This document shows, one piece after another, positions 40,712 to 63,671 of a stretch of 64,000 nt of DNA (its first letter is position 1; each line of letters begins with the position of its first letter). The notes beneath the pieces are model-generated. The model searched no databases. It was not told the DNA's origin and saw only the letters and a list, made by a program, of their open reading frames with translations. Location of the stretch: IMG/VR virus record IMGVR_UViG_3300024308_000018, positions 124,001 to 188,000 of that record; one strand, 5' to 3'. The translations under genes were made by a program, and so were the position numbers.

Positions 40712-43324
40712 ATGGGTGACTCACTCGTAAGATCCCGTATGCGTATCCGCAACATCCTGAACAATGGCTGGGATGATCTTGCGGACTGCGAAGTGTTTGT
40801 TCGTGACCCCGATAACTTGGACTGGATACGCCTCGTCCCCGGCGACTTCAGTATCAGGAATCAGACGAACAGCGGATGGATCGACATTGACAACGAAGCA
40901 GAGCCGGACATCGACGACCCGTGCGCACGCATGACGATGCCGGGTTCGTGCAACGGTGGAATCGAAGATAAGGAAATGGGATCCGGTGACGGCTTTGGTT
41001 CGGGCGGCGCAGTGTGGGAGCAAGTTGCGGGTTATCCTGCTGGCTACGACATGCCTGACGCGGGCCTCGCTGGTTTCGGCGTGGAGCCCGTCGACATGTG
41101 GCCGACTGGATTTGCGTTGCGTCGCACTGGTGCCGAAATGGTGGAGAGCTATGACAACGCTCCGGTGGCTGCCCACAACGGTGACGCTTCCTACGCGAAC
41201 CCAGCGCCCGCATGGACTTCCGTGTTCGGGCGCGGTGCGGCAATCACTGAGTTCTGCTACATGCTAGGGCAGACGCCCGGCTACGTGGATCTCACGTGGG
41301 TGTGCTGGGAACAGTTCGGGATGTCGGTCGACGTCTACTATCTGGGAATACGTCGTGGCACTAGCTGCGGTAAGAAAACCGGACGCGGACGCCTGCGCTT
41401 CTACTACGACCCAGCAGAAGGTAACGGCGAAGAGCGGATCATGGTTCGCGTGCGATGCAATGAAGCCGGACGTTGGGCGCTGCATTGCCGAGCACCAAGC
41501 GAGTTGCTTGCCTCAGAAGTCAACAACCTGCGGCCCGACTACTACAAGCCGTATGCGATCACCAGCATGCCGGACGTGTTGTCGCCGCACTATCTGGGCA
41601 CTCCGATTTTCCCCGCGCCCTGTCACGCTGCGGTGTACGTGAAGCCCGAGCGTCTGTCGATGCGCGGCCACTTCGAATACTACCACCACGTTGGGGAACT
41701 CGCGGGCTGGATGTATCTGGACTTCAAGTCGTGGAACAACAAGGATTTCGTTGAGGTGTACCACTATGGTCGCCGTATTGCCACGACACTGGATCCAGAA
41801 AGCGGACGCGGTTACCTGAAGTTCTACTTCGACCCGACGCAGAACCAGTGTCAGGATATTGTGGTGCGTGTTGTTAGTGAAGATTTCGCAGAGGTGCAGC
41901 CAGATGGCAGCAAGCCAGATGCGACTTCCGTTTACTACGGCCTGTGGTGTCCGGAAACGCGCGGTGCCCGAGAGTTCCGCCACCCCTGCGGTGCTTACGA
42001 GGTAACGAGCGCGGGCCACCCGACCACTGAAGACAACTTCGACTTGCAGAACAAGTTCAAGGACGACGTGTGCGGCATCCTGATCAACTGCCAAGCTGGC
42101 AACCAGAAAGCGAAGTTCGAAGTGTTCGACGTCAACGACAACCTGTTGGATACTCAGATCGTGGAAGCCGGACAGACGGGCAACCTCGAATACTGGGCAC
42201 CGATAGGCGACAGAGACGTTCGTTATCCTCGCGTTCACGTTACGTCTGGCATCGGCTGTAGCTGGCGCTACTTCGTGCACTGCGCCATCCAGAAACCTGA
42301 CGTCGAAGTTCCGTCAACTATCATCCCGTTCACTTGCGTTGAGACCCCGAAGGCCGATGACCTGCCGGGCGGGAACGGCGCGTGGCGTCTGGTGGTCGAT
42401 AACGTGTGGGCCGACTGGATCAGCTATCCGTGGCGCGAAGACTGCGAATACTACATCGTGGGAACGAACCATGACGACATCATGGTGCGCAACATTGTTC
42501 CGTATGCACCGATTGCGATGTCGATTGGAACAACGGAAGAGATGTTCTACGATGGTGGTGACAACGCTCCGCGTGTTCGTATGGGCCGTGGCAATCGCGC
42601 AGACCCTAACACTGGGTTCATCGCGTGGATGGGGATTCGGCAGGTGTACGAGCGGGAAATCATTATTTCCCCGGACACTGAGGGAACGGAGTTCGATAAC
42701 AGCTGGCGCATTGTAGCGAATGGCAGTGGCGCAATCCTCGGCAGCGTTGCGTGGGAACATGGCTATGAATATTTCATATTCTCGTCCGATGACCACGGAG
42801 CCCAAGAGATTTCGCAGACGCACTTCTTCATGCCGCAGCCAGATCGTTTCCCCAAGTGGCCGACAGATGATGCGCGCTGGTGTATCACAACGTCTAACTC
42901 CAACGACTTCAGTTTTTGGAAGGACAAGACGATGCGTGCTTCTCGCGCGTGGGACACCAACTACAAGACCATGATGGTAATCCGCCGTCCGATCTTCGAA
43001 TCGCAAGGCGACCTCGATTATTTGGGCTGGCGCGAAGACCTCTACGACCCGTGGGCAGAAGGTCACGCTGGACGTGCGTTCCCTTGGGTGGCCGGACGCG
43101 AATATGCGCTCTGGAACATTGCGAAGGACTACCGCACTGATCAGCACTCGATCTGTTCGCACAACCACATCGTCGGTCTGGGCAAAAACGGTATTGCGTC
43201 GTTCGGTTACGGCAACACCAAACTCAAGTACCCAGTAGGGAACGGGATTGAATGTTGGTACGATGACTGGTCGTGCTTCTACCTGATGTCGCGTCCGTTC
43301 GTAGTGGAAGGGCTCGATGTTTAA
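40712..43324 (+). CDS. Cys/Trp-rich repeat-containing fibre-associated protein
   Basis: AAGGAG RBS; internal repeats (GRGRLRFYYDP / GRGYLKFYFDP). Confidence 0.75.
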   Translation: MGDSLVRSRMRIRNILNNGWDDLADCEVFVRDPDNLDWIRLVPGDFSIRNQTNSGWIDIDNEAEPDIDDPCARMTMPGSCNGGIEDKEMGSGDGFGSGGAVWEQVAGYPAGYDMPDAGLAGFGVEPVDMWPTGFALRRTGAEMVESYDNAPVAAHNGDASYANPAPAWTSVFGRGAAITEFCYMLGQTPGYVDLTWVCWEQFGMSVDVYYLGIRRGTSCGKKTGRGRLRFYYDPAEGNGEERIMVRVRCNEAGRWALHCRAPSELLASEVNNLRPDYYKPYAITSMPDVLSPHYLGTPIFPAPCHAAVYVKPERLSMRGHFEYYHHVGELAGWMYLDFKSWNNKDFVEVYHYGRRIATTLDPESGRGYLKFYFDPTQNQCQDIVVRVVSEDFAEVQPDGSKPDATSVYYGLWCPETRGAREFRHPCGAYEVTSAGHPTTEDNFDLQNKFKDDVCGILINCQAGNQKAKFEVFDVNDNLLDTQIVEAGQTGNLEYWAPIGDRDVRYPRVHVTSGIGCSWRYFVHCAIQKPDVEVPSTIIPFTCVETPKADDLPGGNGAWRLVVDNVWADWISYPWREDCEYYIVGTNHDDIMVRNIVPYAPIAMSIGTTEEMFYDGGDNAPRVRMGRGNRADPNTGFIAWMGIRQVYEREIIISPDTEGTEFDNSWRIVANGSGAILGSVAWEHGYEYFIFSSDDHGAQEISQTHFFMPQPDRFPKWPTDDARWCITTSNSNDFSFWKDKTMRASRAWDTNYKTMMVIRRPIFESQGDLDYLGWREDLYDPWAEGHAGRAFPWVAGREYALWNIAKDYRTDQHSICSHNHIVGLGKNGIASFGYGNTKLKYPVGNGIECWYDDWSCFYLMSRPFVVEGLDV

Positions 43325-43325
43325 C

Positions 43326-43348
43326 GAGGGGGCTTCGGCCCCTTCTTT
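43326..43348 (+). terminator. intrinsic terminator
   Basis: GAGGGGGC-TTCG-GCCCCTTCTTT. Confidence 0.7.
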
Positions 43349-43359
43349 GGAGAATTTGG

Positions 43360-46300
43360 ATGTCAAACCTCTGCACGTTTACCAGACCACTTGCGTGCGC
43401 TTGGTCTGGGAACCATAACCCGTTAGCGGGCAAGGCATCGTTGATGGCGGACACACAACCAGCCACCAACATGTGGACAGCGTTCGCGATCCGTAACGAG
43501 CAGACTGCTGGCTACTGCTTCGGCTACGGATCAGCATTCATGAATGGATACTTCGATTCCAAAGACCGTCCGGTAGGCAACGGAATTTTTGGCGACTTCA
43601 GCAAACCCGAGTACCTGACACAAGGTGCTATGGTGCAGCTGAAGATTGCACTATCGTTGGCGGCACGCGTCGAGCGCGGATCCATGACGCTTGTCCTTAA
43701 CGACTCGCCTGATTGGGCGAACCATCTCACCAACATGGACGGCAACGCCAAATCCTACGGGCAGCTCATGAAGTATTTGAGCGCCACGGAGCCGATGGCA
43801 ATGCTGACCATGAACGAACTTCAAAACGGCGCACTCAACTACGACGGCACCGTTGCATTCTTCGAGAAGTTCAAGCGCATCATCATTCTGCTTAGCGGTT
43901 CCCCAAACTGGCTAGTAGGTGACGCGCTGTGTAAAAACCTGTCCGACGCAATCGGACGCGGAGCCCCAGTCGTCTGCGTGCACGCCGATGGGTACAGTTG
44001 GAATTCCAATCACACGTTCAACCGCATTTTTGGTGTGGTTGGAATGCAAGTGGCAGGTGCCAACTACACCCACCTTTACGCGGAAGCCATCACTGACTAC
44101 AAGAACATCTATGGCGATGACTTGTCATGGAAGTCGATCACGTCACTGTACGGCGGGCGTCGCATGTTCATCTCTGGGGCTGCGGCGTACAGCCACTCGC
44201 GCTCCATGCCTACGGCGGGGCTCGACGGCTTCCCCGGCACGTGGGCTCAAGGTGTTTGTGTTGACGTGCCGTTTACCGACAGCATCTACATTCCGAACAT
44301 CGTGGTGTTCCGGCCGAACTGTTGTTACAACGAAGGCGACGTGTACTCCATGGAGTTCGACGTTCCGGCCACCGTGGTAAAGCCCACCGACTTCAAGACG
44401 GATCTGGCGAACGGGATTCTACACTTCGACTGGTGGCACGAACTTCAGACCGCCGAGCACGCACCGGAAGTCCTTCACGTTCGGGCACGCGGGTGGCATG
44501 TGGGCGGTGGCATGACGTACACCACTAATGCCATCCGTTACCGTGGAAGCAAGTGGGATGCACAGCGCAGCTACAACGTCATGGTGTTCAGCCGTGCGAC
44601 TGGCGATGTGCTGGACTACCGCTCATTCGACGTGTACGGCAACGCGGCGAAAGCCGCAGAGTGTGCGGCTTTCCTCAATGCGCAGGACGCCAGCCGCATC
44701 GTGTTGGTGGTGACCAGCGACGAGCCGACCCGTAACTTGACTGCCGAGTTGCAGAGTGCGCTGATTCGCATTGGTGCGGGGGCCGCAACGCTACGCAAAA
44801 TGAAAGTGCGTAGTGCCTACATGCTGCTCGGTATTCCCGGCGTGCCCGTGGGGATCGAGCGGTACAAGGGGGCCATGGATGAAGACCCGAACGCCGTAGT
44901 GGATGCAGCGTTTGACTTCCGCCCCGACGGTGCCCGCCCCATCGAGCCGCGCATGTCGGACACCACAGGCAAAGTGATTGTCGCAACGTTGCAGGGTATT
45001 GCGGAGCGTGCGTTGTTCCAAGCCAACTGGGATTCGTACCAAAACCAGAAGGCCATCGGCAATCCGGCGGTCGCAGCATTCAACGCCCGCTGGGTGAAGA
45101 ACGCGCTGAACTGGATTCGACGCGGAACCACGATGGAAGTTCTGTTCGTGCCGACCAAGATGGCGACCACTGGCGACTGGAATCCGATGAACACGGATCC
45201 CAACGGCTGCTCGTCCATCATGGACTACATCAGGGCTGCTGGATTCAACGTGTCGGTGCTCGACCACACCAAGATCAGCAAACCCGTCGCCAGTGCCTAC
45301 GGCAAGTACGACGTCGTGGTGTTCTGGGCAGCAGGTGGTGGCTCCGATGATCCGGCGCGCATGCAGATTCTGATGCCTGTGCTGCAAACCGTGGTCAAGG
45401 GCGGCGCTGGGCTGTTCGCGATTTCTGATACCGCGCACCCGACGATGAATGCGCTGGCTGACATGTACTCGGTGCAAACGAACTTCGTTGCGGGCATCCA
45501 ACCGGATTCCTTCAACGTGGAGCGTGCGCGTGCCCAACATGGTGACCACGTGATATTCGAGGGCCTGCAAGGCTCGTTCGCCAATGACAGCGCAGCTGGC
45601 GGTTTCCTCACCCAGACCCGTTTGCTTTGGCCGTACTGTGTGGACGGTGAGGCGTTGGAAGTTGTGCAGCTAAAGGAGAACGGACGTATCGCGCGTTTCC
45701 GCTACACCAAGATCCTCGACGGCATGGATAACCGCAAAGTCTTTACCCTCGACGCATGGACGAAGCTCACTGACCTGCGCTTTAAGAAGATCGACATGAG
45801 TGACACCGACAAGTGGCCGCTCACAATCGAGATGCCGTGCGCATTGGTCGATGACGTTCCGCAGTACCGCATCGACGACGTGGAAGTCGAGGAAGGTAAC
45901 AGCGGCCACACTCAAGCAGTGTTCACCGTGTCACTTGCGTGGCCCCTGCGCGGGCGTCCCGCTATCATCAGCTGGAAAGTTGTTGATGGTACAGCAACCA
46001 CGGCGATCAGCAGCAACGCGGAGAAGATGCCGAAGTCGCTTCTGATTGACGAGCATGGGAACTGGCACTCGGTTTACATTGAGTATGATCTGGTGCGCAT
46101 TGCTGCTGATGGCGCGTTCCCCAAGTTCTACAACGGGACAATGCTGTCTGGTTCGTGGCAGCGCCGCTACTTCAAGAACATACTGGACTGGATGCAACGG
46201 GGTCGCGCGAAACGCCGTGTGCTGTTCCTTGGCGACCAAGCGGACGTCAACGTGAACTACGCGACGCTAGGCGCTAAGGGTGTCGACTTCGGTGACGCAG

Positions 46301-47382
46301 TGCCAGCCACTATCCGCGAAGCAGGGTACACAGTGGACTCCATGGTGTGGCAGAACTTCTACGGCGGCAAGCCCTCCGTTGATAACTTCCTTGTCTATGA
46401 CTCCATCGTGTTTATCAGCTCTACGACTGGAGCCAGCACTGCGATTCCGCCGCAGTTCTCCAAGAACATGGAGGCCGCTGTCCGCAAGGGCATGGGGCTG
46501 TTCGCAATTACTGACCACGATGTGTTCACGAAATCGTTCACCAGCATCATGAACCGTTTCGGTGTCCGCATCTACAATGACCCGACTGAAGCAAGCATGG
46601 TGTACCTCGACCAGTGCCGAGCAGCGCTTGAAAACAAAGCGCTGCTCGAAGGCATTACGATTCCGGTATTCCAAGCGCCCGGTTCGATCTCGGCGTTCAT
46701 TGTCGACCCAGCTGTTATGGCACCGCCTGATCTCGACCCGCCGTTCAGTGGGGAGTTGATCTTCTCTCAGAACGAGATTCAGAAGCAGATTGCCATCAAC
46801 GTAATAGGCGAGCTGTTGCCTGAAGATGACGAGTTCTTCTACGTCGACTTGTTCAATCAGAGTCGCGGGGACATCATTAAGGGCCGTGGCGTTGGCACCA
46901 TCATCAACGACGATGGCGATCTGTTCAACACCAGACAGCTCGACAAGATTGTTTCGTGGAGTGGTTACATTGCGGGTGGGGATTGGCCCACTGTACCAGA
47001 CGTCAGCCTGTTCCTGATTCCTGTTCCCGCGAAGTACGGGCACACCGAAGAGGGCGGCACCGTCTGGATTTCTACAGACAGGGTGGACGTTGTTCAAGCT
47101 GACCGCAGTGGGTGGAACGCTACGTACAAGTTTACCGTGGGACGTCAGACGGCGTGCACCATTCGCATTGTCGACGATGACTCAAGCAACACCAAGATCT
47201 ACAACTCCGCAGGCGGTCTTGTGTTCGAGTGGGGCTCGGGTGGTGGTGGGTCGTCCATGCAGCAACCGTTGTTGCTCCAAGCAGATGAATACACCGTTGT
47301 CTGCTGGGTACACAACGATGCGAACGGCAATGACTATTGGAGCAACCCCGGCTACTTGGGCGTCTCAATAAGGAGAGCATGA
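43360..47382 (+). CDS. multidomain adhesin-like protein (ILEI/GG-lectin, split Calx-beta, three GATase-like folds)
   Basis: ILEI: YNVMVFSR..RSFDVY..IVLVVTSDEP..RSAYMLLG; Calx-beta halves VEEGNSG..FTVSL..DGTA and GELIF..EDDEFFYVDL..GTIINDD. Confidence 0.75.
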   Translation: MSNLCTFTRPLACAWSGNHNPLAGKASLMADTQPATNMWTAFAIRNEQTAGYCFGYGSAFMNGYFDSKDRPVGNGIFGDFSKPEYLTQGAMVQLKIALSLAARVERGSMTLVLNDSPDWANHLTNMDGNAKSYGQLMKYLSATEPMAMLTMNELQNGALNYDGTVAFFEKFKRIIILLSGSPNWLVGDALCKNLSDAIGRGAPVVCVHADGYSWNSNHTFNRIFGVVGMQVAGANYTHLYAEAITDYKNIYGDDLSWKSITSLYGGRRMFISGAAAYSHSRSMPTAGLDGFPGTWAQGVCVDVPFTDSIYIPNIVVFRPNCCYNEGDVYSMEFDVPATVVKPTDFKTDLANGILHFDWWHELQTAEHAPEVLHVRARGWHVGGGMTYTTNAIRYRGSKWDAQRSYNVMVFSRATGDVLDYRSFDVYGNAAKAAECAAFLNAQDASRIVLVVTSDEPTRNLTAELQSALIRIGAGAATLRKMKVRSAYMLLGIPGVPVGIERYKGAMDEDPNAVVDAAFDFRPDGARPIEPRMSDTTGKVIVATLQGIAERALFQANWDSYQNQKAIGNPAVAAFNARWVKNALNWIRRGTTMEVLFVPTKMATTGDWNPMNTDPNGCSSIMDYIRAAGFNVSVLDHTKISKPVASAYGKYDVVVFWAAGGGSDDPARMQILMPVLQTVVKGGAGLFAISDTAHPTMNALADMYSVQTNFVAGIQPDSFNVERARAQHGDHVIFEGLQGSFANDSAAGGFLTQTRLLWPYCVDGEALEVVQLKENGRIARFRYTKILDGMDNRKVFTLDAWTKLTDLRFKKIDMSDTDKWPLTIEMPCALVDDVPQYRIDDVEVEEGNSGHTQAVFTVSLAWPLRGRPAIISWKVVDGTATTAISSNAEKMPKSLLIDEHGNWHSVYIEYDLVRIAADGAFPKFYNGTMLSGSWQRRYFKNILDWMQRGRAKRRVLFLGDQADVNVNYATLGAKGVDFGDAVPATIREAGYTVDSMVWQNFYGGKPSVDNFLVYDSIVFISSTTGASTAIPPQFSKNMEAAVRKGMGLFAITDHDVFTKSFTSIMNRFGVRIYNDPTEASMVYLDQCRAALENKALLEGITIPVFQAPGSISAFIVDPAVMAPPDLDPPFSGELIFSQNEIQKQIAINVIGELLPEDDEFFYVDLFNQSRGDIIKGRGVGTIINDDGDLFNTRQLDKIVSWSGYIAGGDWPTVPDVSLFLIPVPAKYGHTEEGGTVWISTDRVDVVQADRSGWNATYKFTVGRQTACTIRIVDDDSSNTKIYNSAGGLVFEWGSGGGGSSMQQPLLLQADEYTVVCWVHNDANGNDYWSNPGYLGVSIRRA

Positions 47383-47606
47383 TGGCAGCGTATGGAGTTT
47401 TAGCAATCCGCGACCCTGCGACAGGCAACTGGTACGATAATTTACGTGAACGTGGTTATCGTGTGCGATATTTGGATCCCGCGCTGGGATCCTTTCGCTG
47501 GGTTCTCATGACCGTGAACAACACGCGAATCAGAAATCCCGAGCATAACCCAGCTGTGCACCAACCAAACGATCCGGTGTATCCGAAATGGACAACTCCG
47601 GTCTAA
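47379..47606 (+). CDS. small fibre-associated protein resembling the N-terminus of 40712
   Basis: AAGGAG RBS; IRDP..W / RIRNP pattern. Confidence 0.65.
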   Translation: MMAAYGVLAIRDPATGNWYDNLRERGYRVRYLDPALGSFRWVLMTVNNTRIRNPEHNPAVHQPNDPVYPKWTTPV

Positions 47607-47617
47607 GGAAATAGACG

Positions 47618-48442
47618 ATGGTAATGCAGAAGATTAACACCTCCATGATCGACGCTTCCGCTGCGGAAGAAGGCTCGCGCCTTGAAGTCGCTGGCGGTGG
47701 CACTGCGGACTTCGTACCTCCCGGTGCTAGTGACCCGTTATTTGAAGGCGATGCCGCTTACAACTATGACCCTGAAACCGGAACGTTGACTGTCTCGTAC
47801 CCAGACGGACGCCAGCAATCGGTGAAAGGATTCGTGCGGACGAGTGACCTTCAACAAGCAATGCGTGGTGCGCCGGGGCTTCCGGGTGCGCCGGGCACGC
47901 CGGGGAAAGACGGACGCGCAGGGCGAGACGGAGAGCAGGGCTGTCAGGGGCGAAAGGGTGACCGTGGGCGGATGGGCCCAACTGGTGGGACGGGCCCTCG
48001 CGGCTCGACTGGTAACACTGGCCCCACTGGTGATACTGGCCCCACTGGCCCCGATGGCCCTCCCGGCAAGGACGCGGTGAAAGCAGATTATACCGTCGTG
48101 CAGTACGTGGATCCCGATACCGAGATCCCATACGAGCAAGCATACTCCGGCTACGATCATGATGTGATGACTGGTCGCATTACGAACGGCGGGCGAGTGA
48201 TTGCGCGTGCACTGCGCGATACTATAAACGTGACGTTCCAAAAGCCGTTTCAGAACCACGTACTGTCCGTGACCATTACGTTCATGGACATGACTACGAA
48301 TCAAGCCAAGACGTTCAAGTTGTATAACCACGCGCGCAAAGATGGCACGTTTGAAAACAGCATGCTTGGTGGGTTCGTGATCAAGTGCTCGGGGGTGAAC
48401 ACGGCGGACTGGGATTTCTTCTACACCGCAATAGGGGATTAA
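47618..48442 (+). CDS. collagen-like fibre protein 4
   Basis: Gly-X-Y run; C-terminal beta-sandwich typical of fibre tips. Confidence 0.85.
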   Translation: MVMQKINTSMIDASAAEEGSRLEVAGGGTADFVPPGASDPLFEGDAAYNYDPETGTLTVSYPDGRQQSVKGFVRTSDLQQAMRGAPGLPGAPGTPGKDGRAGRDGEQGCQGRKGDRGRMGPTGGTGPRGSTGNTGPTGDTGPTGPDGPPGKDAVKADYTVVQYVDPDTEIPYEQAYSGYDHDVMTGRITNGGRVIARALRDTINVTFQKPFQNHVLSVTITFMDMTTNQAKTFKLYNHARKDGTFENSMLGGFVIKCSGVNTADWDFFYTAIGD

Positions 48443-48443
48443 A

Positions 48444-49223
48444 ATGTCGAGCGTTCAGGGATTTGCCGCTTCCTTGTATAACCTCGCACTAGAGAGTGGG
48501 CTGCAAAACGGCCCACTTGTCTATCAGGTTCGTGCAGGGACGGATAAGTACGTCGTGGTTTCCAATGTGGAGCCCACGGAGTTGGTACTGCCGCTGAATA
48601 TCCTTTGGGTGCATCTGGAAAACGGTACGCCTACGCTGCTGCGTCGCGTATCGAAAGAAGCTGGCTCCGGCACGCTTCACACATGGGCACCCGAAACCAA
48701 CTACGATGCAATCTTCACCACGGAAAATGTTTGGGCACCCGAAGACCAAGTTGTGCGCTCCGCTAATTTAGTGGAAGGTGGGCAGCTAACTGGCCCATTG
48801 TATCCTGTGGCGAAAGACGTCTACGAAGAAACTGAAGTGCCTCCGGTTAGCTGGGTGCGGAAGTTCGTAAACGGCGTTCGCAACTCTCTGATGTCCATGT
48901 ACCAGAACATGAACAACCGAGTGCTGTACGATGACCAGCGGATTCGTGCTCTTACGTTGCGGACGGAAGAGACGGTTGCGCGGGTACAAACGCTGGAAGG
49001 CAGCGCCTCCAACAACCAACATCTGCACTCGCAAGAGATGGAATCAGGCGTCTGGGTTGTCGACCACGGATTTGGCCCCGACATGATCGTGACCATTTTT
49101 GTGACTGACAGTAATGGGGATAATATATGGCCCGACAGAGTGCAAAGAGAGGGCGATACGCACGTAGTGTATTTCTCGCTTGCGCTATCTGGCTATGCGT
49201 TGGCAATTGGAATGAAGCCGTAG
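48444..49223 (+). CDS. virion fibre-associated protein
   Basis: C-terminal WVVDHGFG..V.D..G domain shared with 51530, 53293 and 53911. Confidence 0.7.
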   Translation: MSSVQGFAASLYNLALESGLQNGPLVYQVRAGTDKYVVVSNVEPTELVLPLNILWVHLENGTPTLLRRVSKEAGSGTLHTWAPETNYDAIFTTENVWAPEDQVVRSANLVEGGQLTGPLYPVAKDVYEETEVPPVSWVRKFVNGVRNSLMSMYQNMNNRVLYDDQRIRALTLRTEETVARVQTLEGSASNNQHLHSQEMESGVWVVDHGFGPDMIVTIFVTDSNGDNIWPDRVQREGDTHVVYFSLALSGYALAIGMKP

Positions 49224-50026
49224 CTGGCCCGCGCACCATTCTCGTAATCCGCAGTGAGTCGGTTTCACCTTACAGCGGCACGCAGTATGGTGCGCAATTG
49301 CTTGGCAGCGGCTACACTCACGTGATTACCCTGTACCTGCCGAGTGCAGCGAACGGCAACACGTGGATCAGTGACCAATATGAAGCGCGTATTCTGGAAG
49401 CGGTAAAAAGGTGGCAACCAGAATTGGTAGTGTCTGCCGAAATCGACTTGGACAATTTCCCGACCTTGCGCACTGCCCTCGGCCCCAAACTTCGCACCGT
49501 GAAGCCTTTGGGGGTATTGGACGTAGCGCGTTCGTCGTTCGAGCGACTGCATAAGTTCCTCGTTACTACGGGGATCAGCGACCGCAAGTTCTATCTCCTG
49601 TACCGACCGGAGTATGGGCCGCTGTATGATGACGTCGCTCGCGAATCAGGGTTCAAGTCACTGGAGCCCATCGCGGTCTCCACGCTCGGCGAACTGAAGT
49701 CCGCGCTCGCCAGTATTCCACGCGACGACAACGTTGCAATCATCAATGCTTTGACGCACGTAGAGGACATAGAGTTCAACTACGCGCTGCTCGGCCCGAA
49801 GGTAGCGAGTATCATTCGTCGCACGGGCTTGCTCGACCTGAGTGTGATTGACAGTGCCCCCGGTGCTGTGAGCGTGCGACATAGTGCCGCACAGATCAAC
49901 TTTGAGGCGAGTACCATCACAGCAGGTAACGTTGTTCTGTGTGTGGATCCAAAGCGTCTGCGCGCCCTTGGTCTCAAAGAGGTCTACGTTGTAGGGTTCG
50001 CTGACATAGATTCCATCACTCAATAA
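49127..50026 (+). CDS. exported periplasmic solute-binding-like protein (ABC_sub_bind type)
   Basis: Signal peptide ending AVA-G; RTILVIRS..TLYL..EAVKRWQPELVV, VSTLGELKSAL, VDPKRLRALGL. Confidence 0.55.
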   Translation: MARQSAKRGRYARSVFLACAIWLCVGNWNEAVAGPRTILVIRSESVSPYSGTQYGAQLLGSGYTHVITLYLPSAANGNTWISDQYEARILEAVKRWQPELVVSAEIDLDNFPTLRTALGPKLRTVKPLGVLDVARSSFERLHKFLVTTGISDRKFYLLYRPEYGPLYDDVARESGFKSLEPIAVSTLGELKSALASIPRDDNVAIINALTHVEDIEFNYALLGPKVASIIRRTGLLDLSVIDSAPGAVSVRHSAAQINFEASTITAGNVVLCVDPKRLRALGLKEVYVVGFADIDSITQ

Positions 50027-50040
50027 TTTGAAGGCACACA

Positions 50041-50331
50041 ATGGACGATAAAATCGTGGCCCTCGTCAGACGCGCATTGATTGTTGCCGCAATAGTCCTG
50101 CTCGGTTCTGTCGTGTGGACGGGTTCTCGTAGCCGTGAGCCCTCACCATCTTCAGCTGACGAGCAGGTGTTTTGCGCGTCGGCCATCTGTTTCTACGATT
50201 CGGTTAGAGGCAAGGAATGCCTCGACTTCCAACCTACAGTCAGCAAGCTCATTCCAGTACCGGACGTTCGCGGCGATAGCGTTCGGCTGGTAATCGAAGC
50301 GACTGGGAAAGAATGCAAGGAACGAAGATGA
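50041..50331 (+). CDS. small N-anchored membrane protein with four Cys
   Basis: TM ALIVAAIVLLGSVVW; four Cys in the soluble domain. Confidence 0.7.
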   Translation: MDDKIVALVRRALIVAAIVLLGSVVWTGSRSREPSPSSADEQVFCASAICFYDSVRGKECLDFQPTVSKLIPVPDVRGDSVRLVIEATGKECKERR

Positions 50332-50777
50332 TGGACTTCATTCAAACCCTGCTTAACGGAAACTTCGCTACCGTAATCTCGGTCTTGATCTCAGCCGCGC
50401 TTATCGCGTTTACGTGGTACATTGCGTTGCCTGCGATCACGGAAAGAAACCAACTGCGAGAGCAGCTGAAGGAAAACCACTCACCTGAGCGCGTGGAAAA
50501 TCTGGTTGAGCGCATGTCCGAGGAACTAGCTTCGGTCACGCAGCAAATGACGGAGTTGAGTCGAGTTCTTGCAGAGATGCAAACTCACGCTACCGTTACC
50601 TCGCGTGCTGAAGGAACGGCACAGGCCGAGTTGTATACGCTGCTGGATGAAATACGCCAGCAGATGCACAACCTTGCCACCCGCTTCGTCAGCTTAACCA
50701 ACACCGTTAACGCAATGGGTGGACAACGCCAAGTGCCGCGTTCACCTGACGGCCTTAACGTTCGAGGACTCAGATAG
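50328..50777 (+). CDS. single-TM coiled-coil membrane protein (holin-like architecture)
   Basis: TM FATVISVLISAALIAFTWYIAL followed by about 100 aa of heptads. Confidence 0.7.
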   Translation: MMDFIQTLLNGNFATVISVLISAALIAFTWYIALPAITERNQLREQLKENHSPERVENLVERMSEELASVTQQMTELSRVLAEMQTHATVTSRAEGTAQAELYTLLDEIRQQMHNLATRFVSLTNTVNAMGGQRQVPRSPDGLNVRGLR

Positions 50778-51517
50778 TGAGTAAATATCTCCGAAACAAC
50801 ATAGGCTTTCGCCGCAGCAGTGCAGCGCAGTATGCTGGATTCTATAGCGCTAAGTCCTATATGCTCGGGGAGATTCTTGATGGGCCCAAATCCAACATCT
50901 TCTCCCCAACGGCCCGCGAGATACTGCTTCAGTATTTCTCGGCAATGGAGCTTCTTCTCCGTGACATCGAAGTTGCTTTCATCGCGTGTAGCGATGGGGT
51001 GGTCTCTGATGTCGCGGTCTCGAAGTGTAAGGTGTCGGCTCGGGAATTCAGTTCGAGCCTGCACCAAATCATTAAAGATAACCCGCAAGACTTCGACCCA
51101 GTGTTTGCTGAGCCGTGGGCTGCGGTGGTCGCTGAATCTGCTACGCCGTTGCTGGATGCCGCGCGTGACCTTCTCGAAGGTGACATCGAATCCGCGTTCT
51201 GCATGGCAGTTGGCTTCTGCACGTCGTACCTCAATCACATCATGTTCATCTTGCATGAGCTGGTGTGCTTGCTAAATGGCGCGGCACCAATCCTGTACCT
51301 GAGTGACATTGACATTCGGATTCAGGCCCGAAAATCTTACAGCTTGTCCCGCGCCCGCTTGAACGTGTACCGCACATTCAACCTGCTGAAGGATGACGCT
51401 GAGATCAAAGTTCTATGCGAGTTCGATGACGCAAAGGTGCGTGACGACGAGCGTAGTTTGGTGGCGTACAGAGCACTCCTTGATTCTGTATCCACCTACT
51501 CACTGAAACTGTCTTAA
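50777..51517 (+). CDS. helical hypothetical protein
   Basis: TAGTG coupling with the upstream gene; GAGG RBS. Confidence 0.7.
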   Translation: MSKYLRNNIGFRRSSAAQYAGFYSAKSYMLGEILDGPKSNIFSPTAREILLQYFSAMELLLRDIEVAFIACSDGVVSDVAVSKCKVSAREFSSSLHQIIKDNPQDFDPVFAEPWAAVVAESATPLLDAARDLLEGDIESAFCMAVGFCTSYLNHIMFILHELVCLLNGAAPILYLSDIDIRIQARKSYSLSRARLNVYRTFNLLKDDAEIKVLCEFDDAKVRDDERSLVAYRALLDSVSTYSLKLS

Positions 51518-51529
51518 CGGAGAGACAAC

Positions 51530-53224
51530 ATGAACGTAGCTGGTAATCTGAAACTGCTGGGCCAAGGCCAAATCAAGAACTTCCTGCCTGAAGTTCTGGC
51601 CGTCGACCCGTCCGGTGTCGAGCTGTTTGAAGGTCGCGGCTGGTGGAACTCTACCTCCAAGTCTCTGAAGTTCTACAACGGCACCGAAGTGATCACTCTG
51701 GCCGTCGGTGGCGACCTGAGCGACTACATCCGCGCCGACGGCACCGTTGCCATGACTGGCGATCTGCTGCTGTCCAGCACTGACCAATCCGGTTCCGACG
51801 CCAAGGCCGCCATCTCCAAAGGCTACGCCGAGACCCTGCTGCAAGCCAAGCAAAACACCGTAACTGGTGCTGCCTCCACCATCGTTGCTGCCGACCTGAC
51901 CGCCAACAAAGCGGTGATCTCCGATGCACAAGGTAAAGTCGTGGCCGCTGCGGCGACCGCTGCTGAAATCGAACATCTGGCTGGCGTCACTGCTCCGATC
52001 CAAACTCAGATCGACGGCAAGCAAGCTGCGCTGGGCTTCACCCCGCTGAACAAGGCTGGTGACAACCTCGACGGCGACATCAACGCCAACGGTCACAAGA
52101 TCTCTGGTCTGGGTGCTCCGGCTGCTCCGACTGATGCCGCTCGTCAGATCGACATCGACAACGCGCTGTCCGGCCTGAACTGGCAAGAAGACGTGAAGGG
52201 TGTGCAGGCTGATGCCACTCTGGATCCGGGTACTCCGGTGAAAGGTGATCGCTACATCATCACCGACTCCGCTGCTCTGCACGCTGGCTTCGGCACCATC
52301 GCTGGTGTTGGTAACGGCGACATCGTTGAGCACGACGGCACCGAGTTCGTTGTTGTGTTCGACGTGAGTGCTGAAGGCGAGAAAGCCAACGGTACTCTGG
52401 TGTGGGACAACGGCACCACTACCTACAAACGCTTCCTGTCCGGCGCATGGGGTTCCTTCGGCGGCCTGAGCGACATCAACGCTGGTACTGGTCTGGAGCA
52501 GATCGGCAACACCATCAACGTCAAGATGGGTGCTGGTATCGTTGAGCTGCCGGAAGATGGCGTCGGTATCGACCTGCGCGCTGAATCCGGTCTGGCTCTG
52601 CTGGATGCTGGTGGTGCTGAATCCACCGCAGCCGATGCCAAGCTGACCGTCAAGCTGGACGGCAACTCCCTGACCAAGGGCGCCAACGGTCTGAAGATCG
52701 CTGCCGCTGGTGTTGGCGCCGCTGAACTGGCTGCCGCTGCTCTGGGTAACGGTCTGGTTGGTGGTGAAGGTTCCGTCGTTACCGTGAAAGCCAAGGCCGC
52801 TGGTGGCGTTGTTGTTGACGCCGAGGGCGTGTCCGTGGACAACGCGGTGCTGGAACTGACCTTCCTGAAAGAGACTGGCGACACTGCCGCCGACCTGAAG
52901 GTTACCGCTGTCCCCGCTGCCGACACCGACGTCGTGCGCCTGCTGGAACTGAACGCCGCCAAGGCCGAAGCTACCGCTGCCGCCGAGACCGTGAACACTC
53001 GCCTGACCAACAGCGAGTACGTTTACAACGGTCTGGCCAACGTGCAAGCTACCCACACCATCACCCACGGCCTCAACAACGCGTACCCGCAAGTTGAAGT
53101 CATGGACGCCGACGGCGCTACCGTAATGGTAGACTCCATCGTGCGTGTAGACGCCAACACCGTAAGCGTAAGCGTTCTGCCTGCTTCCGGTATCCGTGTC
53201 GTAGTTCGCGGCAACAAGAACTGA
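51530..53224 (+). CDS. abundant fibre/whisker structural protein
   Basis: GGAG RBS; extreme codon bias; TDAA stalk motif; G/A-rich beta repeats; followed by a terminator. Confidence 0.8.
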   Translation: MNVAGNLKLLGQGQIKNFLPEVLAVDPSGVELFEGRGWWNSTSKSLKFYNGTEVITLAVGGDLSDYIRADGTVAMTGDLLLSSTDQSGSDAKAAISKGYAETLLQAKQNTVTGAASTIVAADLTANKAVISDAQGKVVAAAATAAEIEHLAGVTAPIQTQIDGKQAALGFTPLNKAGDNLDGDINANGHKISGLGAPAAPTDAARQIDIDNALSGLNWQEDVKGVQADATLDPGTPVKGDRYIITDSAALHAGFGTIAGVGNGDIVEHDGTEFVVVFDVSAEGEKANGTLVWDNGTTTYKRFLSGAWGSFGGLSDINAGTGLEQIGNTINVKMGAGIVELPEDGVGIDLRAESGLALLDAGGAESTAADAKLTVKLDGNSLTKGANGLKIAAAGVGAAELAAAALGNGLVGGEGSVVTVKAKAAGGVVVDAEGVSVDNAVLELTFLKETGDTAADLKVTAVPAADTDVVRLLELNAAKAEATAAAETVNTRLTNSEYVYNGLANVQATHTITHGLNNAYPQVEVMDADGATVMVDSIVRVDANTVSVSVLPASGIRVVVRGNKN

Positions 53225-53241
53225 TAGTTGACACGTCATGG

Positions 53242-53266
53242 AGGGGAGCGCAATGCTCCCCTTTTT
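53242..53266 (+). terminator. intrinsic terminator
   Basis: AGGGGAGC-GCAAT-GCTCCCCTTTTT. Confidence 0.85.
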
Positions 53267-53292
53267 AGTTTTCATTCTGCGGAGAAACGCAC

Positions 53293-53901
53293 ATGAAATG
53301 TCTAGGTAACGTTAACATGCTGGGGAACAAGATCCAGAGCATGTCCCTCGAAAACAAGAATGAGTATCCGGCCACCCCGACTATCGGATCTCTGGAACTC
53401 ATTCAGAAGCGCCTGATGCTGTGCATCGACGTTGGCACGGACGCACAAAATCCGCTGCCGATGTGGGTTCCGCAGTCCAGCGAAGTGCAGATGTTCCGCT
53501 TCAACCAGCCGACCAACTCCACCACGTGGCTGGTAGAACATGGCCTGAACAACTCCACTCCTGTGTTCCAGATTTACGACGCGAACGGCCACATCTTCAC
53601 GCCGGACGAAGTTGTGATCGTGGATCCCGACACCATCTCCATCTCGCTGAACACTCCGATGATGGGCAGCGTTACCGTCCTGTCCGGCACCATGTATGGC
53701 TCGCCTGCGCTGTCCCCTGTAGTGACCCAGAAGTTCACCGCTGCCACCACGTGGACGCTGGCGCACAACTTGGGTCGCATTCCCACTGTTCGCATCTACG
53801 TGAACGGCGCAGAAGTGCAGGCTCCGGTAACTGTCGACGCGAACAACGTCAGCGTGGACTTCGGCACCAACTCAGTAGCTGGTACTCTGCTGCTGTTCTA
53901 A
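53293..53901 (+). CDS. fibre-associated protein, paralog of the 51530 termini
   Basis: N-terminus similar to 51530; two W-x3-H-x-L domains. Confidence 0.75.
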   Translation: MKCLGNVNMLGNKIQSMSLENKNEYPATPTIGSLELIQKRLMLCIDVGTDAQNPLPMWVPQSSEVQMFRFNQPTNSTTWLVEHGLNNSTPVFQIYDANGHIFTPDEVVIVDPDTISISLNTPMMGSVTVLSGTMYGSPALSPVVTQKFTAATTWTLAHNLGRIPTVRIYVNGAEVQAPVTVDANNVSVDFGTNSVAGTLLLF

Positions 53902-59996: not shown

Positions 59997-60554
59997 ATGA
60001 TCTTAGTCCCCGCGCACGTCACACCAGTGAACATGATCCACGAAGTAGAGGCCCCTGAAATGCTGCTTACCGTTCAGAATGCTCGGATGCCGGATTACTC
60101 AGTGCTTGATCCAACTACCATAATGCGTAACTGGATCAACGAAGGGCCGACTGCAAAATCGCGCATCGGGGACTTCGGTAGATCGATCACCAACTTGGAG
60201 AAGACCACAACTCTCATGTGCTGCGCGGTAGGCAAGCCCCGCCTCGGCAAGTACATGATGCGTGTAAAGTTCACTGGGTCGGGAACGTACTACTGCGCGG
60301 TCGTTGCCCTTAGTTCGTACTCACTGGCGGGGCGCATTGCGTATACCGACTACCTAGCGTTGAACACGTGGCATACGGTCAAAGTGGAAATGGGTGCTGA
60401 CGGCTTGTGCAAAGTATACGTCAACAGTACGCTGACCTGCTCAAGCAAGCTAGTTAAGGATGTCGGGCTCTACGTGTTCAATAATATCGACAAGGTTGAG
60501 ATAGATGCTGGACAGTTAGGAAGTCCGTTGCTGGATGGGTATGAGTGGCTGTAA
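59997..60554 (+). CDS. SPRY/ConA-like paralog 3
   Basis: GKPRLGKYMMRVKF..WHTVKVE..IDAGQLG. Confidence 0.7.
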   Translation: MILVPAHVTPVNMIHEVEAPEMLLTVQNARMPDYSVLDPTTIMRNWINEGPTAKSRIGDFGRSITNLEKTTTLMCCAVGKPRLGKYMMRVKFTGSGTYYCAVVALSSYSLAGRIAYTDYLALNTWHTVKVEMGADGLCKVYVNSTLTCSSKLVKDVGLYVFNNIDKVEIDAGQLGSPLLDGYEWL

Positions 60555-60597
60555 CCGCCCACGGTAATTTAGGGTGTCCACCAATAGGAGATAGGGA

Positions 60598-60849
60598 ATG
60601 CAAGTAGCGAAACGTCATCAAACTTCTGGGATGCGCGCGGTGTGTGCCCAGATCATGCAGAGCGTGTCGGAAGACCAGCAGCAATCTCCAAAGCAGCTGG
60701 CCTACGACAAGTTGTTCCGTGACAAGTGCGCGGAGAACAAGGTGAATCACCCGTTCGAACTCGGCGAACCTAACGCGATCAAAAAGTTCTTCTCTGAGCT
60801 TCAGATAGCGTGGGCTGAGTACAAAGACAAGCACGATATGGTTGACTAA
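60598..60849 (+). CDS. small hypothetical protein
   Basis: AGGAG RBS; preceded by a TAATTT box. Confidence 0.7.
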   Translation: MQVAKRHQTSGMRAVCAQIMQSVSEDQQQSPKQLAYDKLFRDKCAENKVNHPFELGEPNAIKKFFSELQIAWAEYKDKHDMVD

Positions 60850-60906
60850 GGCCCGTGCTCCCTGCCGTGACCAGTGCACGGCAGTTCTAACATCATTAGG
60901 AGACCT

Positions 60907-61230
60907 ATGAAATTCTCGGAACTTTTTGCATCGTTCACTGTGGAGCAAAGCATTTACATTCTCTACTGGATTGCTGGCATCGCAACGCATTGGGGAATGA
61001 AACTGCAACGCGAAGGTGTAACGGCCAAGCAATACTGGGCAAGCAAACCCCTCAACAGTATTGCCAGTATCCTCGTCAGCTTCGCGGTAGTGCTGAACTC
61101 GCTCTTGACGGGCGACAACGAATTCATGACTTACTTCGGCGCGGGTTTCGTAGCCGAGGCATTCATCAATCGTTACGTGGCTACCCAAGGAGGTGACCCA
61201 AATGTTGGAAAAGCTGAAAGCGTGCGGTAG
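60907..61230 (+). CDS. putative holin
   Basis: AGGAG RBS; 107 aa with 2-3 TM segments; upstream of spanin-like genes. Confidence 0.6.
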   Translation: MKFSELFASFTVEQSIYILYWIAGIATHWGMKLQREGVTAKQYWASKPLNSIASILVSFAVVLNSLLTGDNEFMTYFGAGFVAEAFINRYVATQGGDPNVGKAESVR

Positions 61231-61480
61231 CTGGCTGCTGGGGTTGCTCGCGCTGCTGGCTGCCGTCCTGTTCGGAGCGAACATGCTTCGTGGGAGAAAG
61301 CAGTCAGAAGCAGGCGACGCAAGCGCGCCCGCAGGCAAGGCCCCCATGGTGGAGGCGCAAGCCAAGGAGACGGACACGGTAAACATCAAGGTTGAGGAAA
61401 TCAACGAGGTGAAGCCGCCCGCCAAGACTCCCAAGGATAAAAACATGGAGGCCATGCTTGAAGACTATGACCGGCTTTAG
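61202..61480 (+). CDS. putative i-spanin-like inner-membrane protein
   Basis: GGAGG RBS; N-terminal TM WLLGLLALLAAVLFG; overlaps the lipoprotein gene. Confidence 0.55.
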   Translation: MLEKLKACGSWLLGLLALLAAVLFGANMLRGRKQSEAGDASAPAGKAPMVEAQAKETDTVNIKVEEINEVKPPAKTPKDKNMEAMLEDYDRL

Positions 61481-61958
61481 TGCGCGCGTTATCCTGTTCT
61501 GCGTAGTGCTGCTTTGCGCGGTGGCACTCAGTGCATGTAGCACTGTTCCGCAGGCAGGCCCCGAGCCCCGCACCAGTATCGAGCAGATCCCCGACATGAA
61601 GCAGGTGCAGGTTCCAAAGTTGGAGCCAGCGGCAAAGCCGAGGTTGGTGGTGCGTGAGATTGAAGGTGTGAAGGTGCCAACTCTCGGTAACGAGGGCATG
61701 GCGCAGCTGATAGACCTATACAAGCACGATGGGTATGCGACGAGCACCGCGAACTCTGCGGTGGAAGTTGCGAACGCCGCAATTGCGGAACGTAACCGAC
61801 TGCTTGCATTGGCTAAGGCGGAAGAGGCGGAGGGGAATCGACTACGTGCTGAGTTACACGTCGAGAAGGAGGCGAGAAAGGACGAGCGAATGTGGGGCAA
61901 CGTTGAACTCAACGCGACGCGTGCCCTGTTGCTGCTGTCCATTCTGGCCGGAATGTAG
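61467..61958 (+). CDS. lipoprotein, spanin-like
   Basis: Lipobox LSAC; Pro-rich linker; coiled coil; hydrophobic C-terminus. Confidence 0.65.
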   Translation: MTGFSARVILFCVVLLCAVALSACSTVPQAGPEPRTSIEQIPDMKQVQVPKLEPAAKPRLVVREIEGVKVPTLGNEGMAQLIDLYKHDGYATSTANSAVEVANAAIAERNRLLALAKAEEAEGNRLRAELHVEKEARKDERMWGNVELNATRALLLLSILAGM

Positions 61959-63167: not shown

Positions 63168-63671
63168 TCAGTAGATTGAAGTTATGTACTCGGCTGCACC
63201 GCGCAGCGACGAGTGACGGGGACGCAACGTCAACACGGAATACGTCGGGTGGTCAACGCGGTTTTCAACATTCCAGCCGTGCACGCCGATAGGGAACTTG
63301 ACGTGGGGCTCAGGCACTTGCATTGGAATGATTGAGAGGTAAAGGACGTTGACGAACGGCATGGCCTGCTTATAGATTTCGGCCCCGCCGATCACAATCG
63401 GCTGATTGCGTGCAATAGACAACGCCTCTTCAATGCTACTGACGCAATCAACGCCACGGATCCGACGATTGGTCAGCACAATGTTGTGACGTCCGGGCAG
63501 AGGCTTCTTCGGCAGCGAATCCCACGTCCTGCGCCCCATAATGATCGAGCGATTAGCGGTAATTCCCGAGAACCACGCCAGATCTTCCGGAACGTGCCAC
63601 GGCAACGTGCCATCCATCAAACCTATCGCCAAGTTATTGGACACGGCGGCGATCATATCGAGCTTCTGCAT
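63168..63671 (-). CDS. folA: dihydrofolate reductase
   Basis: IAAV..IG..LPWHVPEDL, IMGRRTWDSLP..PLPGRHNIVLT, VIGGAEIY. Confidence 0.97.
   Translation of the reverse strand: MQKLDMIAAVSNNLAIGLMDGTLPWHVPEDLAWFSGITANRSIIMGRRTWDSLPKKPLPGRHNIVLTNRRIRGVDCVSSIEEALSIARNQPIVIGGAEIYKQAMPFVNVLYLSIIPMQVPEPHVKFPIGVHGWNVENRVDHPTYSVLTLRPRHSSLRGAAEYITSIY

Follow-up and report, generated by a model that had tools for sequence, protein, structure and literature searches.

The stretch of DNA considered here, which we call the window, is 64,000 nucleotides long and corresponds to bases 124001-188000 of the 229,746-bp IMG/VR virus record IMGVR_UViG_3300024308_000018, rated complete by CheckV. Its fibre region contains, at 173 kb of the genome, four linked genes on the + strand, here named g1 to g4. 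The first, g1 (49127-50026), encodes a 299-aa protein that appears to be exported and to adopt a type-I periplasmic-binding-protein (PBP) fold, and g2 (50041-50331) a bitopic protein of 96 aa predicted to sit in the inner membrane. The single-transmembrane (TM) product of g3 (50313-50777) has 154 aa, or 149 aa when read from an ATGA overlap at 50328, and g4 (50777-51517), which starts with GTG, encodes a predicted cytoplasmic protein of 246 aa. A first-pass annotation, made from the sequence alone, had placed four linked genes inside the fibre region, and all four open reading frames (ORFs) lie where it put them. Each gene is preceded by a Shine-Dalgarno-like motif, in g1 a GGGG 7 nt upstream of the ATG. 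The junction overlaps within the module measure 1-4 nt: the g2 stop and an internal g3 ATG overlap as ATGA at 50328, and the g3 stop shares 1 nt with the g4 GTG. Judging from the N-termini of homologues, 50328 is the likelier g3 start and is preferred over 50313. Given their strict synteny in distant relatives, the four genes are far beyond chance ORFs.

Nucleotide and protein searches group this uncultured jumbo phage with PaBG, Lu11, NCTB, the Erwinia phages Alexandra, Y3 and Yoloswag, the Dickeya phages AD1 and JA11, and Yersinia phage fHe-Yen9-02. These are 'hairy' jumbo myoviruses, a group named 'Lupandier' in PMC7412058, and the module is specific to their PaBG/Lu11/NCTB/Alexandra lineage. 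Co-occurrence in related phages had been suggested as a check on the four genes, and they are strictly co-conserved: every full-length relative inspected has them in the same order, among them Alexandra, JA11, fHe-Yen9-02, PaBG, Lu11, HRDY3, NCTB and metagenome loci, and 18 of the 19 IMG/VR viral contigs with g4 hold the full set. Among cultivable phages, the homologues are gp230-233 of PaBG and gp100-103 of Alexandra. The uncultured phage or its close kin must also be widespread, since DNA near-identical to 47600-53300 (0.68-0.98 of sampled words) recurs in the metagenomes of several studies, with subsurface, wetland, groundwater, wastewater, fish-gut and bird samples among them.

The start of g1 is unusual. 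Its ATG lies 97 nt inside the upstream gene for a 259-aa fibre-like protein (48444-49223, +), so that the signal peptide is encoded in a second frame of that gene's 3' end (49127-49223, +), and no alternative canonical in-frame start precedes the conserved core. The N-terminus reads as a basic n-region, a hydrophobic core and an A-V-A site, that is, a signal peptide of approximately residues 1-33 with a predicted cut after A-V-A; here and in relatives, signal peptides were called from such residue patterns. Most database homologues are called about 39 codons shorter, and gene callers thus usually miss the signal peptide. In every relative examined, however, the upstream in-frame extension is open: from a start codon it leads through several Arg/Lys and a hydrophobic core, in which the motif L-G-A-x-L-W recurs, to an AxA-like site. 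Overlaps of approximately 100-190 nt with a like signal peptide occur at loci L002, L003, L005, L006, L010, L012 and L014-L031; the exceptions are NCTB and PaBG, which overlap the upstream gene by 1-4 nt only, and Lu11, where there is no overlap. The NCTB homologue, 25% identical, has a textbook signal peptide at its start, and the feature is kept in relatives down to about 20% identity. The placement of the signal peptide in the overlap, already noticed in the first-pass annotation, is shared by most members of the lineage. That an export signal in an overlapping frame has been retained over such distances speaks strongly for the export of g1, whose conserved signal peptide is of Sec type. 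A lipoprotein reading of g1 was considered and, by eye, set aside: there is a Cys in the hydrophobic core (LGAC in Erwinia phages), with charged residues too near for the standard lipobox rule, and NCTB has no Cys at that place.

The fold of the mature g1 product emerges from structure comparison. The AlphaFold2 (AF2) model, built on a 13-sequence alignment (pLDDT 78.5, pTM 0.70), has alternating strands and helices in what is, as modelled, a two-lobed type-I PBP fold. Foldseek matched it with probability 1.00 to many solute-binding proteins (SBPs) and LacI-family cores. With VIA-align the best match was CD0873 (Z 13.1; 231 residues aligned, model residues 35-299), further matches being PnrA, ribose-binding protein and proteins of LacI/CcpA type, with 69 chains at Z>=8. 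The best cluster in the AlphaFold database (AFDB) is the N-terminal part of an 850-aa diguanylate cyclase, aligned to g1 residues 10-299. Type-I PBPs hold their ligand at the C-terminal ends of strands, and the residues conserved among distant g1 homologues lie, in our reading of alignment and model, at the C-terminal ends of the predicted strands.

The first-pass annotation had gone further and likened g1 by eye to the ABC_sub_bind-type family. At the level of fold this holds, through CD0873, which we take to be a PF04392 member, and language-model neighbours lean the same way (77 of 100 in one set, the top clusters with PF04392, at a score of 0.80), although they serve as a lead only. Hidden Markov models do not bear it out, as a Pfam scan of g1 gave no family at E<=0.1. 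Likewise, a profile search of 1.84 billion representatives yielded 11 matches, and none of the nine that were scanned carried PF04392 or any other binding-protein family; a profile search of the PDB gave a chance match only and nothing relevant. The product has no fused signalling output domain and no ABC permease or ATPase nearby. The absence of transport and signalling partners that had been remarked upon extends beyond the locus: a Pfam scan of the genes adjoining the module found no permease, ATPase or kinase, and no ABC ATPase (PF00005) was found in the whole 229.7-kb genome by a search whose control was positive in 14 of 14 genomes. Without a sequence link to bacterial proteins and without an ABC ATPase in the phage, g1 is an orphan, phage-specific exported PBP-fold protein, ABC_sub_bind-like in its fold but not in its sequence.

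These data also bear on whether g1 is an auxiliary metabolic gene, an orphan SBP that would dock on a host ABC importer or chemoreceptor for nutrient uptake, as cyanophage PstS does, with g2-g4 unrelated to it. An exported PBP fold closest to ABC-type binding proteins is what such a gene would encode, and in a phage without permease or ATPase, transport would need host parts. The profile search nevertheless argues that g1 is not a recently captured host gene, given that none of its scanned matches has a binding-protein family. Moreover, g1 is conserved together with g2-g4 across phages of different host genera and sits in a late structural operon. We consider a metabolic role improbable.

The g2 product has an RR pair ahead of a strongly hydrophobic N-terminal TM segment, followed by approximately 55 residues with four Cys. 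These (C45, C50, C60 and C92) are invariant from the window to PaBG, NCTB and Lu11, which bears out the earlier description of a 96-aa N-anchored four-Cys protein, and at each of the viral loci with the module (18 of 18) the number of Cys beyond the TM segment is exactly four. The pattern fits an N-in/C-out anchor with a putative disulfide-bonded periplasmic domain. In Lu11 and HRDY3 the gene is present but unannotated: a 94-95-aa ORF with an N-terminal TM segment and four Cys (L011 3208-3492 and L013 3237-3524, respectively) lies in the space that annotation leaves between the g1-like and g3-like genes. Pfam and PHROGs gave no relative beyond the module, and the Atlas search gave no informative neighbour; g2 has neither a Cys adjoining the hydrophobic core nor a lipobox.

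In g3, an N-terminal tail of 10-17 residues, acidic or neutral and with a conserved (D/E)-x-I-x-x-L-L, precedes one TM segment, about three Lys/Arg, two heptad-regular segments (approximately residues 68-95 and 105-138) and a C-terminus with a conserved R-x-L-R. Across 12 homologues, 0-1 basic residues stand before the TM segment and approximately three after it; by the positive-inside rule, the only guide to topology used here, g3 is probably N-out/C-in with its coiled coil in the cytoplasm. The single TM segment and coiled coil recognized in the first-pass annotation are sound, whereas the parallel that it drew with the T4 holin is probably not: with a cytoplasmic coiled coil, g3 would be unlike T4 T and more like a membrane-tethered cytoplasmic protein such as the releasin of phage Mu. 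Among the language-model neighbours, at scores of 0.85-0.89, are unnamed phage and prophage proteins together with single clusters of Mu releasin (DUF2730) and BhlA holin, all of them leads only. DUF2730 (PF10805) is absent from the Pfam matches of g3 at E<=0.1, and the likeness is that of an Atlas look-alike with a score of 0.87. Matches to PspC (21.5 bits, cut-off 104) and PspA (16.4 bits, cut-off 243) fall below cut-off and are probably driven by the TM-plus-coiled-coil composition. PHROGs places g3 in phrog_31730, 'membrane protein' (4e-7); a tblastn search against phages gave no match, owing to low complexity and divergence.

The fourth protein was described as helical, and its AF2 model (pLDDT 91.3, pTM 0.88) agrees, with five long helices and a small alpha/beta C-terminal part. 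No solved structure matches this fold in a Foldseek search of the PDB or a wide VIA-align search, the best hit being a designed bundle at Z 8.8, and AFDB clusters, ESM Atlas and BFVD returned uncharacterised phage-like proteins and generic helical bundles only. The structure matches comprise one uncharacterised AFDB cluster (TM 0.8) and four uncharacterised phage proteins. Matches to GldL/PorL and hemerythrin-like proteins were judged non-specific, and a putative His/Asp metal site was dropped, the residues varying across the wider family. Homologues of g4 occur in 71 phage records, share the motifs NNIxFR, ARE(I/T)LL, NPxDF and LHE, and belong to phrog_19088 (2e-43). RefSeq and phrog_19088 call them 'ABC transporter'. 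The name is unfounded: g4 and 14 homologues match no Pfam family, the genome has no PF00005 match, and the protein is modelled as soluble, with no transporter TM domain. Without an export signal, g4 is by its model a cytoplasmic protein of new helical fold. For the module as a whole, nothing rose above threshold in Pfam, NCBIfam or PADLOC, and PHROGs returned unnamed or misnamed families only.

Two departures from the four-gene arrangement are informative. In 195-kb Vibrio phages, g3 and g4 occur without g1 and g2, among small non-structural genes and with an endolysin 3.5 kb downstream. In the Alcaligenes phage Afa-NA1 (PV550095.1; L009 4857-5711), the ORF of the g4 homologue reaches upstream into the preceding fibre gene, where it encodes a signal peptide and first strand like those of g1; these pass in frame into g4 at about residue 21, and most of g4 is kept between fibre genes. 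Most of g1, together with the whole of g2 and g3, has apparently been lost by a natural deletion. The pair g3-g4 of the Vibrio phages and the Afa-NA1 fusion make g3-g4 look like the older core of the module and g1-g2 like a periplasmic add-on; the module may also be dispensable, as read from a record of only 78 kb.

The module is embedded in a late transcription unit. Upstream lie a collagen-like fibre gene (47618-48442, +) and the 259-aa fibre-like gene, and downstream a 564-aa virion structural protein (51530-53224, +; phrog_16122). No sigma-70-like promoter and no + strand terminator were found within 47618-53240, and g1-g4 therefore belong to the late fibre transcription unit. The first intrinsic-terminator-like hairpin downstream (53240-53264, +) is a strong one, with a T run behind an 11-bp stem in which 6 pairs are GC, and is the predicted end of the unit, which takes in the fibre genes, the four genes of the module and the gene for the 564-aa virion protein. 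Pieces of g1, g2, g3 and g4 turn up in contigs of four metatranscriptomes, with a depth like that of the flanking genes, which indicates presence only, DNA carry-over being possible.

Some further observations concern the surroundings of the module. The 259-aa fibre-like protein and its homologues (loci L002, L007, L010 and L012) are called 'HNH endonuclease' in RefSeq and phrog_24148. The protein has no Pfam HNH match, and its place in the fibre operon casts doubt on the name, which looks like an annotation error for a fibre-like protein. Matches to phrog_21918 cover the C-terminal part of this protein, the C-terminus of the 564-aa virion protein, and almost the entire length of a 202-aa protein encoded at 53293-53901. 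Directly upstream of the fibre genes, 43273-47382 (+) encodes a very large protein of about 1,300-1,400 aa, whose homologues have an ILEI (PF15711) match and a faint Calx-beta match; the JA11 homologue is an 'ILEI domain-containing protein' in RefSeq, an unusual domain for a phage tail protein. Opposite the + strand genes run antisense ORFs of up to 591 aa, among them 51500-53275 (-), 44791-45570 (-) and 60478-61455 (-). Their translations are of low complexity, and codon bias, in a genome of 57% GC, is the likely source of these ORFs, which do not look like genes.

The position in the fibre operon could also mean that the four proteins serve, as a platform anchored in the membrane, the assembly or chaperoning of fibres or tail 'hairs'; g4, anchored by g3, would then fold or attach the flanking fibre proteins. 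The place of the module between the 259-aa fibre-like gene and the 564-aa virion protein is kept in most relatives, it is translationally coupled to fibre genes, and Afa-NA1 has kept most of g4 between fibre genes after the loss of g1-g3. In Lu11 and HRDY3, however, the upstream neighbour differs, and the g3-g4 pair of the Vibrio phages sits outside structural genes. A cleavable signal peptide on g1 and a Cys-rich domain on g2 would also be pointless for virion assembly in the cytoplasm. The only virion proteomics that we found in the literature on relatives, a shallow gel survey of PaBG with 14 proteins, does not include gp230-233; a paper on Dickeya phage contains no mass spectrometry. On balance an assembly platform seems rather unlikely. 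The g1 signal peptide and the invariant Cys of g2 likewise argue against ordinary virion components, an outcome that, like the lack of a binding fold, of export or of co-conservation, would have spoken against a periplasmic sensing or lysis-timing system such as the first-pass annotation had proposed; the fold, the export signal and the co-conservation were all found.

A second explanation that draws on the same position is superinfection exclusion or progeny protection. Here g1 and g2 would block an envelope step of incoming related phages, such as the action of a tail-tip lysozyme or a DNA-transfer channel; in a variant they would mask the receptor from the periplasmic side, like T4 Sp/Imm or T5 Llp, with g3 and g4 as membrane partners. 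Exclusion genes of the Llp and Cor types encode exported or membrane-anchored products and typically adjoin receptor-binding genes, and the genes for exported and anchored proteins at this locus do so too. Furthermore, g1-g3 evolve at about the rate of the neighbouring fibre genes (g3 fastest of the module), the module is apparently dispensable in Afa-NA1, and the g2 periplasmic domain, if disulfide-bonded, compares with T4 Sp or RI in both size and location. As a rule, however, exclusion is established early in infection, whereas this module has no internal promoter and is co-transcribed with late fibre genes. The conservation of the module across Pseudomonas, Erwinia, Dickeya and Yersinia phages with different fibres and receptors also argues against the masking of one specific receptor, and PHROGs and PADLOC revealed no homology to known exclusion proteins. 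We regard exclusion as unlikely, though as the least unlikely of the rival explanations.

To place the module with respect to lysis, the genes for lysis elsewhere in the genome have to be taken into account. Approximately 9 kb downstream of the module, a candidate lysis cassette (60598-61958, +) begins with an 83-aa protein (phrog_28651), continues with a 118-aa multi-TM holin-like protein (60874-61230) and a 95-aa N-anchored protein (61193-61480), and ends with a 166-aa protein (61458-61958). The last shows a lipobox (L-S-A-C), a coiled coil and, at its C-terminus, a hydrophobic tail (TM); it matches phrog_23384 'lipoprotein' (1.6e-24) and, weakly, P2 LysC, and looks like a unimolecular spanin (u-spanin). 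The holin-like protein resembles, by eye, a two-TM protein encoded near an M15 endolysin in Lu11 and HRDY3. In these two phages a single virion-protein gene separates g4 from a cassette of N-anchored TM, two-TM holin-like and coiled-coil proteins and the M15 endolysin. Muralytic candidates of the present phage lie further away. A soluble 161-aa Phage_lysozyme is encoded at genome 14508-14993 (14.5 kb, -) with no membrane-protein neighbours. Outside the window, genome 109610-110266 (109.6 kb, +) encodes a 218-aa SLT-domain protein in which a hydrophobic segment ending V-S-A follows a probable internal Met start, the pattern of a putative exported or SAR-type muralytic enzyme. A third candidate, a large SLT-containing protein at genome 205 kb, is probably a virion protein. 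Beyond the cassette, 63168-63671 (-) is a 167-aa ORF that resembles dihydrofolate reductase by eye alone, and it marks the point at which the block of structural and lysis genes on the + strand gives way to metabolic genes on the - strand.

Given this holin-like and spanin-like cassette and the muralytic enzymes elsewhere, g1-g4 are not the core holin/endolysin/spanin set, and are an accessory regulator at most. A core lysis role would make g3 an inner-membrane spanin (i-spanin) or class III holin and g2 its partner. The N-terminal TM segment and two coiled-coil segments of g3 do recall Rz-type i-spanins, and Holin_BhlA is among its look-alikes. Such a system would, however, call for an outer-membrane spanin (o-spanin) with a lipobox in or after g3, or a Cys beside the hydrophobic core of g2, and neither is there. 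The u-spanin-like lipoprotein and the holin-like multi-TM protein are already encoded at 60874-61958, the Lu11 counterpart of the latter (matched by eye) lies in a small cassette that ends with an M15 endolysin, and the charge distribution of g3 predicts a cytoplasmic coiled coil. We therefore attach very little probability to a core lysis function.

Our preferred if tentative reading is that the four genes form one module, expressed late, coupled in translation and not part of the virion, which spans the inner membrane and exerts accessory control over a late inner-membrane event, most likely the timing or execution of lysis. In this proposal g1 and the disulfide-bonded domain of g2 would act together in the periplasm, and the cytoplasmic coiled coil of an N-out/C-in g3 would hold g4 at the membrane. 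Through the assembly, binding in the periplasm would be coupled to a step at the inner membrane late in infection, most likely lysis; the holin-like protein or an exported muralytic enzyme would then be under control of an antiholin or releasin type. We favour lysis control because of the late expression, the non-virion localisation signals, the antiholin and releasin parallels, the neighbourhood in Lu11, HRDY3 and the Vibrio phages, and the apparent dispensability of the module. The link is circumstantial, made up of the late operon, the Lu11/HRDY3 cassette, the Vibrio endolysin, the g3 look-alikes, and the co-occurrence of an exported SLT protein with a soluble lysozyme.

Several points weigh against this proposal. 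Homology ties none of g1-g4 to lysis, with no match above threshold in the family scans. The holin-like and spanin-like cassette lies elsewhere in the window, so that lysis does not obviously depend on g1-g4, and the muralytic genes are about 63 kb and about 158 kb from the module. The topology of g3 follows from the positive-inside rule only, and physical contacts among the four products are assumed from gene linkage. The place inside the fibre operon would suit a fibre or adsorption role equally well. Finally, the Afa-NA1 record has only 78 kb, compared with 230-310 kb in relatives, and may not represent a viable complete phage.

A more specific version of lysis control would make g1 a receptor and g2 its co-receptor, which signal via g3 to g4 as effector, so that the infected cell reads an external or periplasmic cue and adjusts lysis timing. 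Superinfection, lysis debris, a cell-wall fragment or a quorum signal are candidate cues. We look upon this receptor model as rather doubtful. Should the module indeed read a ligand in the periplasm, it would stand as the first PBP-type receptor that is encoded by a phage and coupled to an infection decision.

How phages control lysis and take decisions at the envelope is understood for only a few models, and the lysis genes of jumbo phages are mostly unassigned. Against this background stands a four-protein module conserved in some 70 jumbo phages with sequenced genomes, which infect Pseudomonas, Erwinia, Dickeya and Yersinia, and in relatives that are widespread in the environment. In public records g1 lacks its signal peptide, g2 is left out for Lu11 and HRDY3, g4 is misnamed 'ABC transporter', and the fibre-like neighbour is apparently misnamed 'HNH endonuclease'. 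Cultivable relatives exist in PaBG, Alexandra, Y3, AD1 and fHe-Yen9-02. Should the module prove to be an exclusion or assembly device instead, the orphan exported PBP fold and the new g4 fold would still add to the catalogue of phage proteins.

Comparison with known systems places each component in context. Like the ABC_sub_bind/Bmp-type PBPs, represented by CD0873 of Clostridioides difficile and by PnrA, g1 is apparently exported and has a two-lobed alpha/beta fold; unlike them, it shows no detectable sequence relationship, has no permease or ATPase partner and belongs to a phage-specific family. Sensor domains fused to diguanylate cyclases share the same fold type, whereas g1 has no fused output domain. 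Cyanophage PstS and g1 are both phage-encoded exported binding-protein folds without a phage transporter. PstS is a clear homologue of a host gene, a type-II PBP that feeds the host PstCAB; g1, in contrast, is without relatives among bacterial sequences and forms a fixed part of a membrane module of four genes. The two-component spanin Rz/Rz1 needs an o-spanin after or inside the i-spanin gene, and no lipoprotein ORF is present in or after g3; nor did any homology to spanins emerge for the module.

The releasin of phage Mu, gp25, has 99 aa; it is a cytoplasmic protein tethered to the membrane (N-out/C-in), and its action frees a SAR endolysin (PMC9239132). Both it and g3 are products of late genes, with a TM segment at the N-terminus; if g3 is N-out/C-in, as predicted, the two would also share that topology and a helical cytoplasmic domain tethered to the membrane. 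On the other hand, g3 is approximately 50 aa longer, has a C-terminal RxLR and is always paired with g4, which Mu lacks, and no SAR endolysin is encoded within a few genes of it. The likeness is one of architecture and not of detected homology.

The T4 lysis-inhibition set of T, RI and RIII offers the broadest parallel. In both systems a single-TM protein goes together with a cytoplasmic partner and with a small Cys-containing protein of the periplasm (about 96 aa) that is exported or N-anchored, and both are late and non-virion; the T4 t gene also adjoins fibre genes. They differ in that T has a large periplasmic domain, whereas g3 probably exposes just 10-17 residues or so to the periplasm, and PHROGs and Pfam scans assign g2-g4 to no holin or antiholin family. 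The T4 genes are scattered and include no PBP-fold component, whereas g1-g4 form an operon. If the receptor model were true, the module would represent a lysis-inhibition-like system built from parts unrelated to those of T4.

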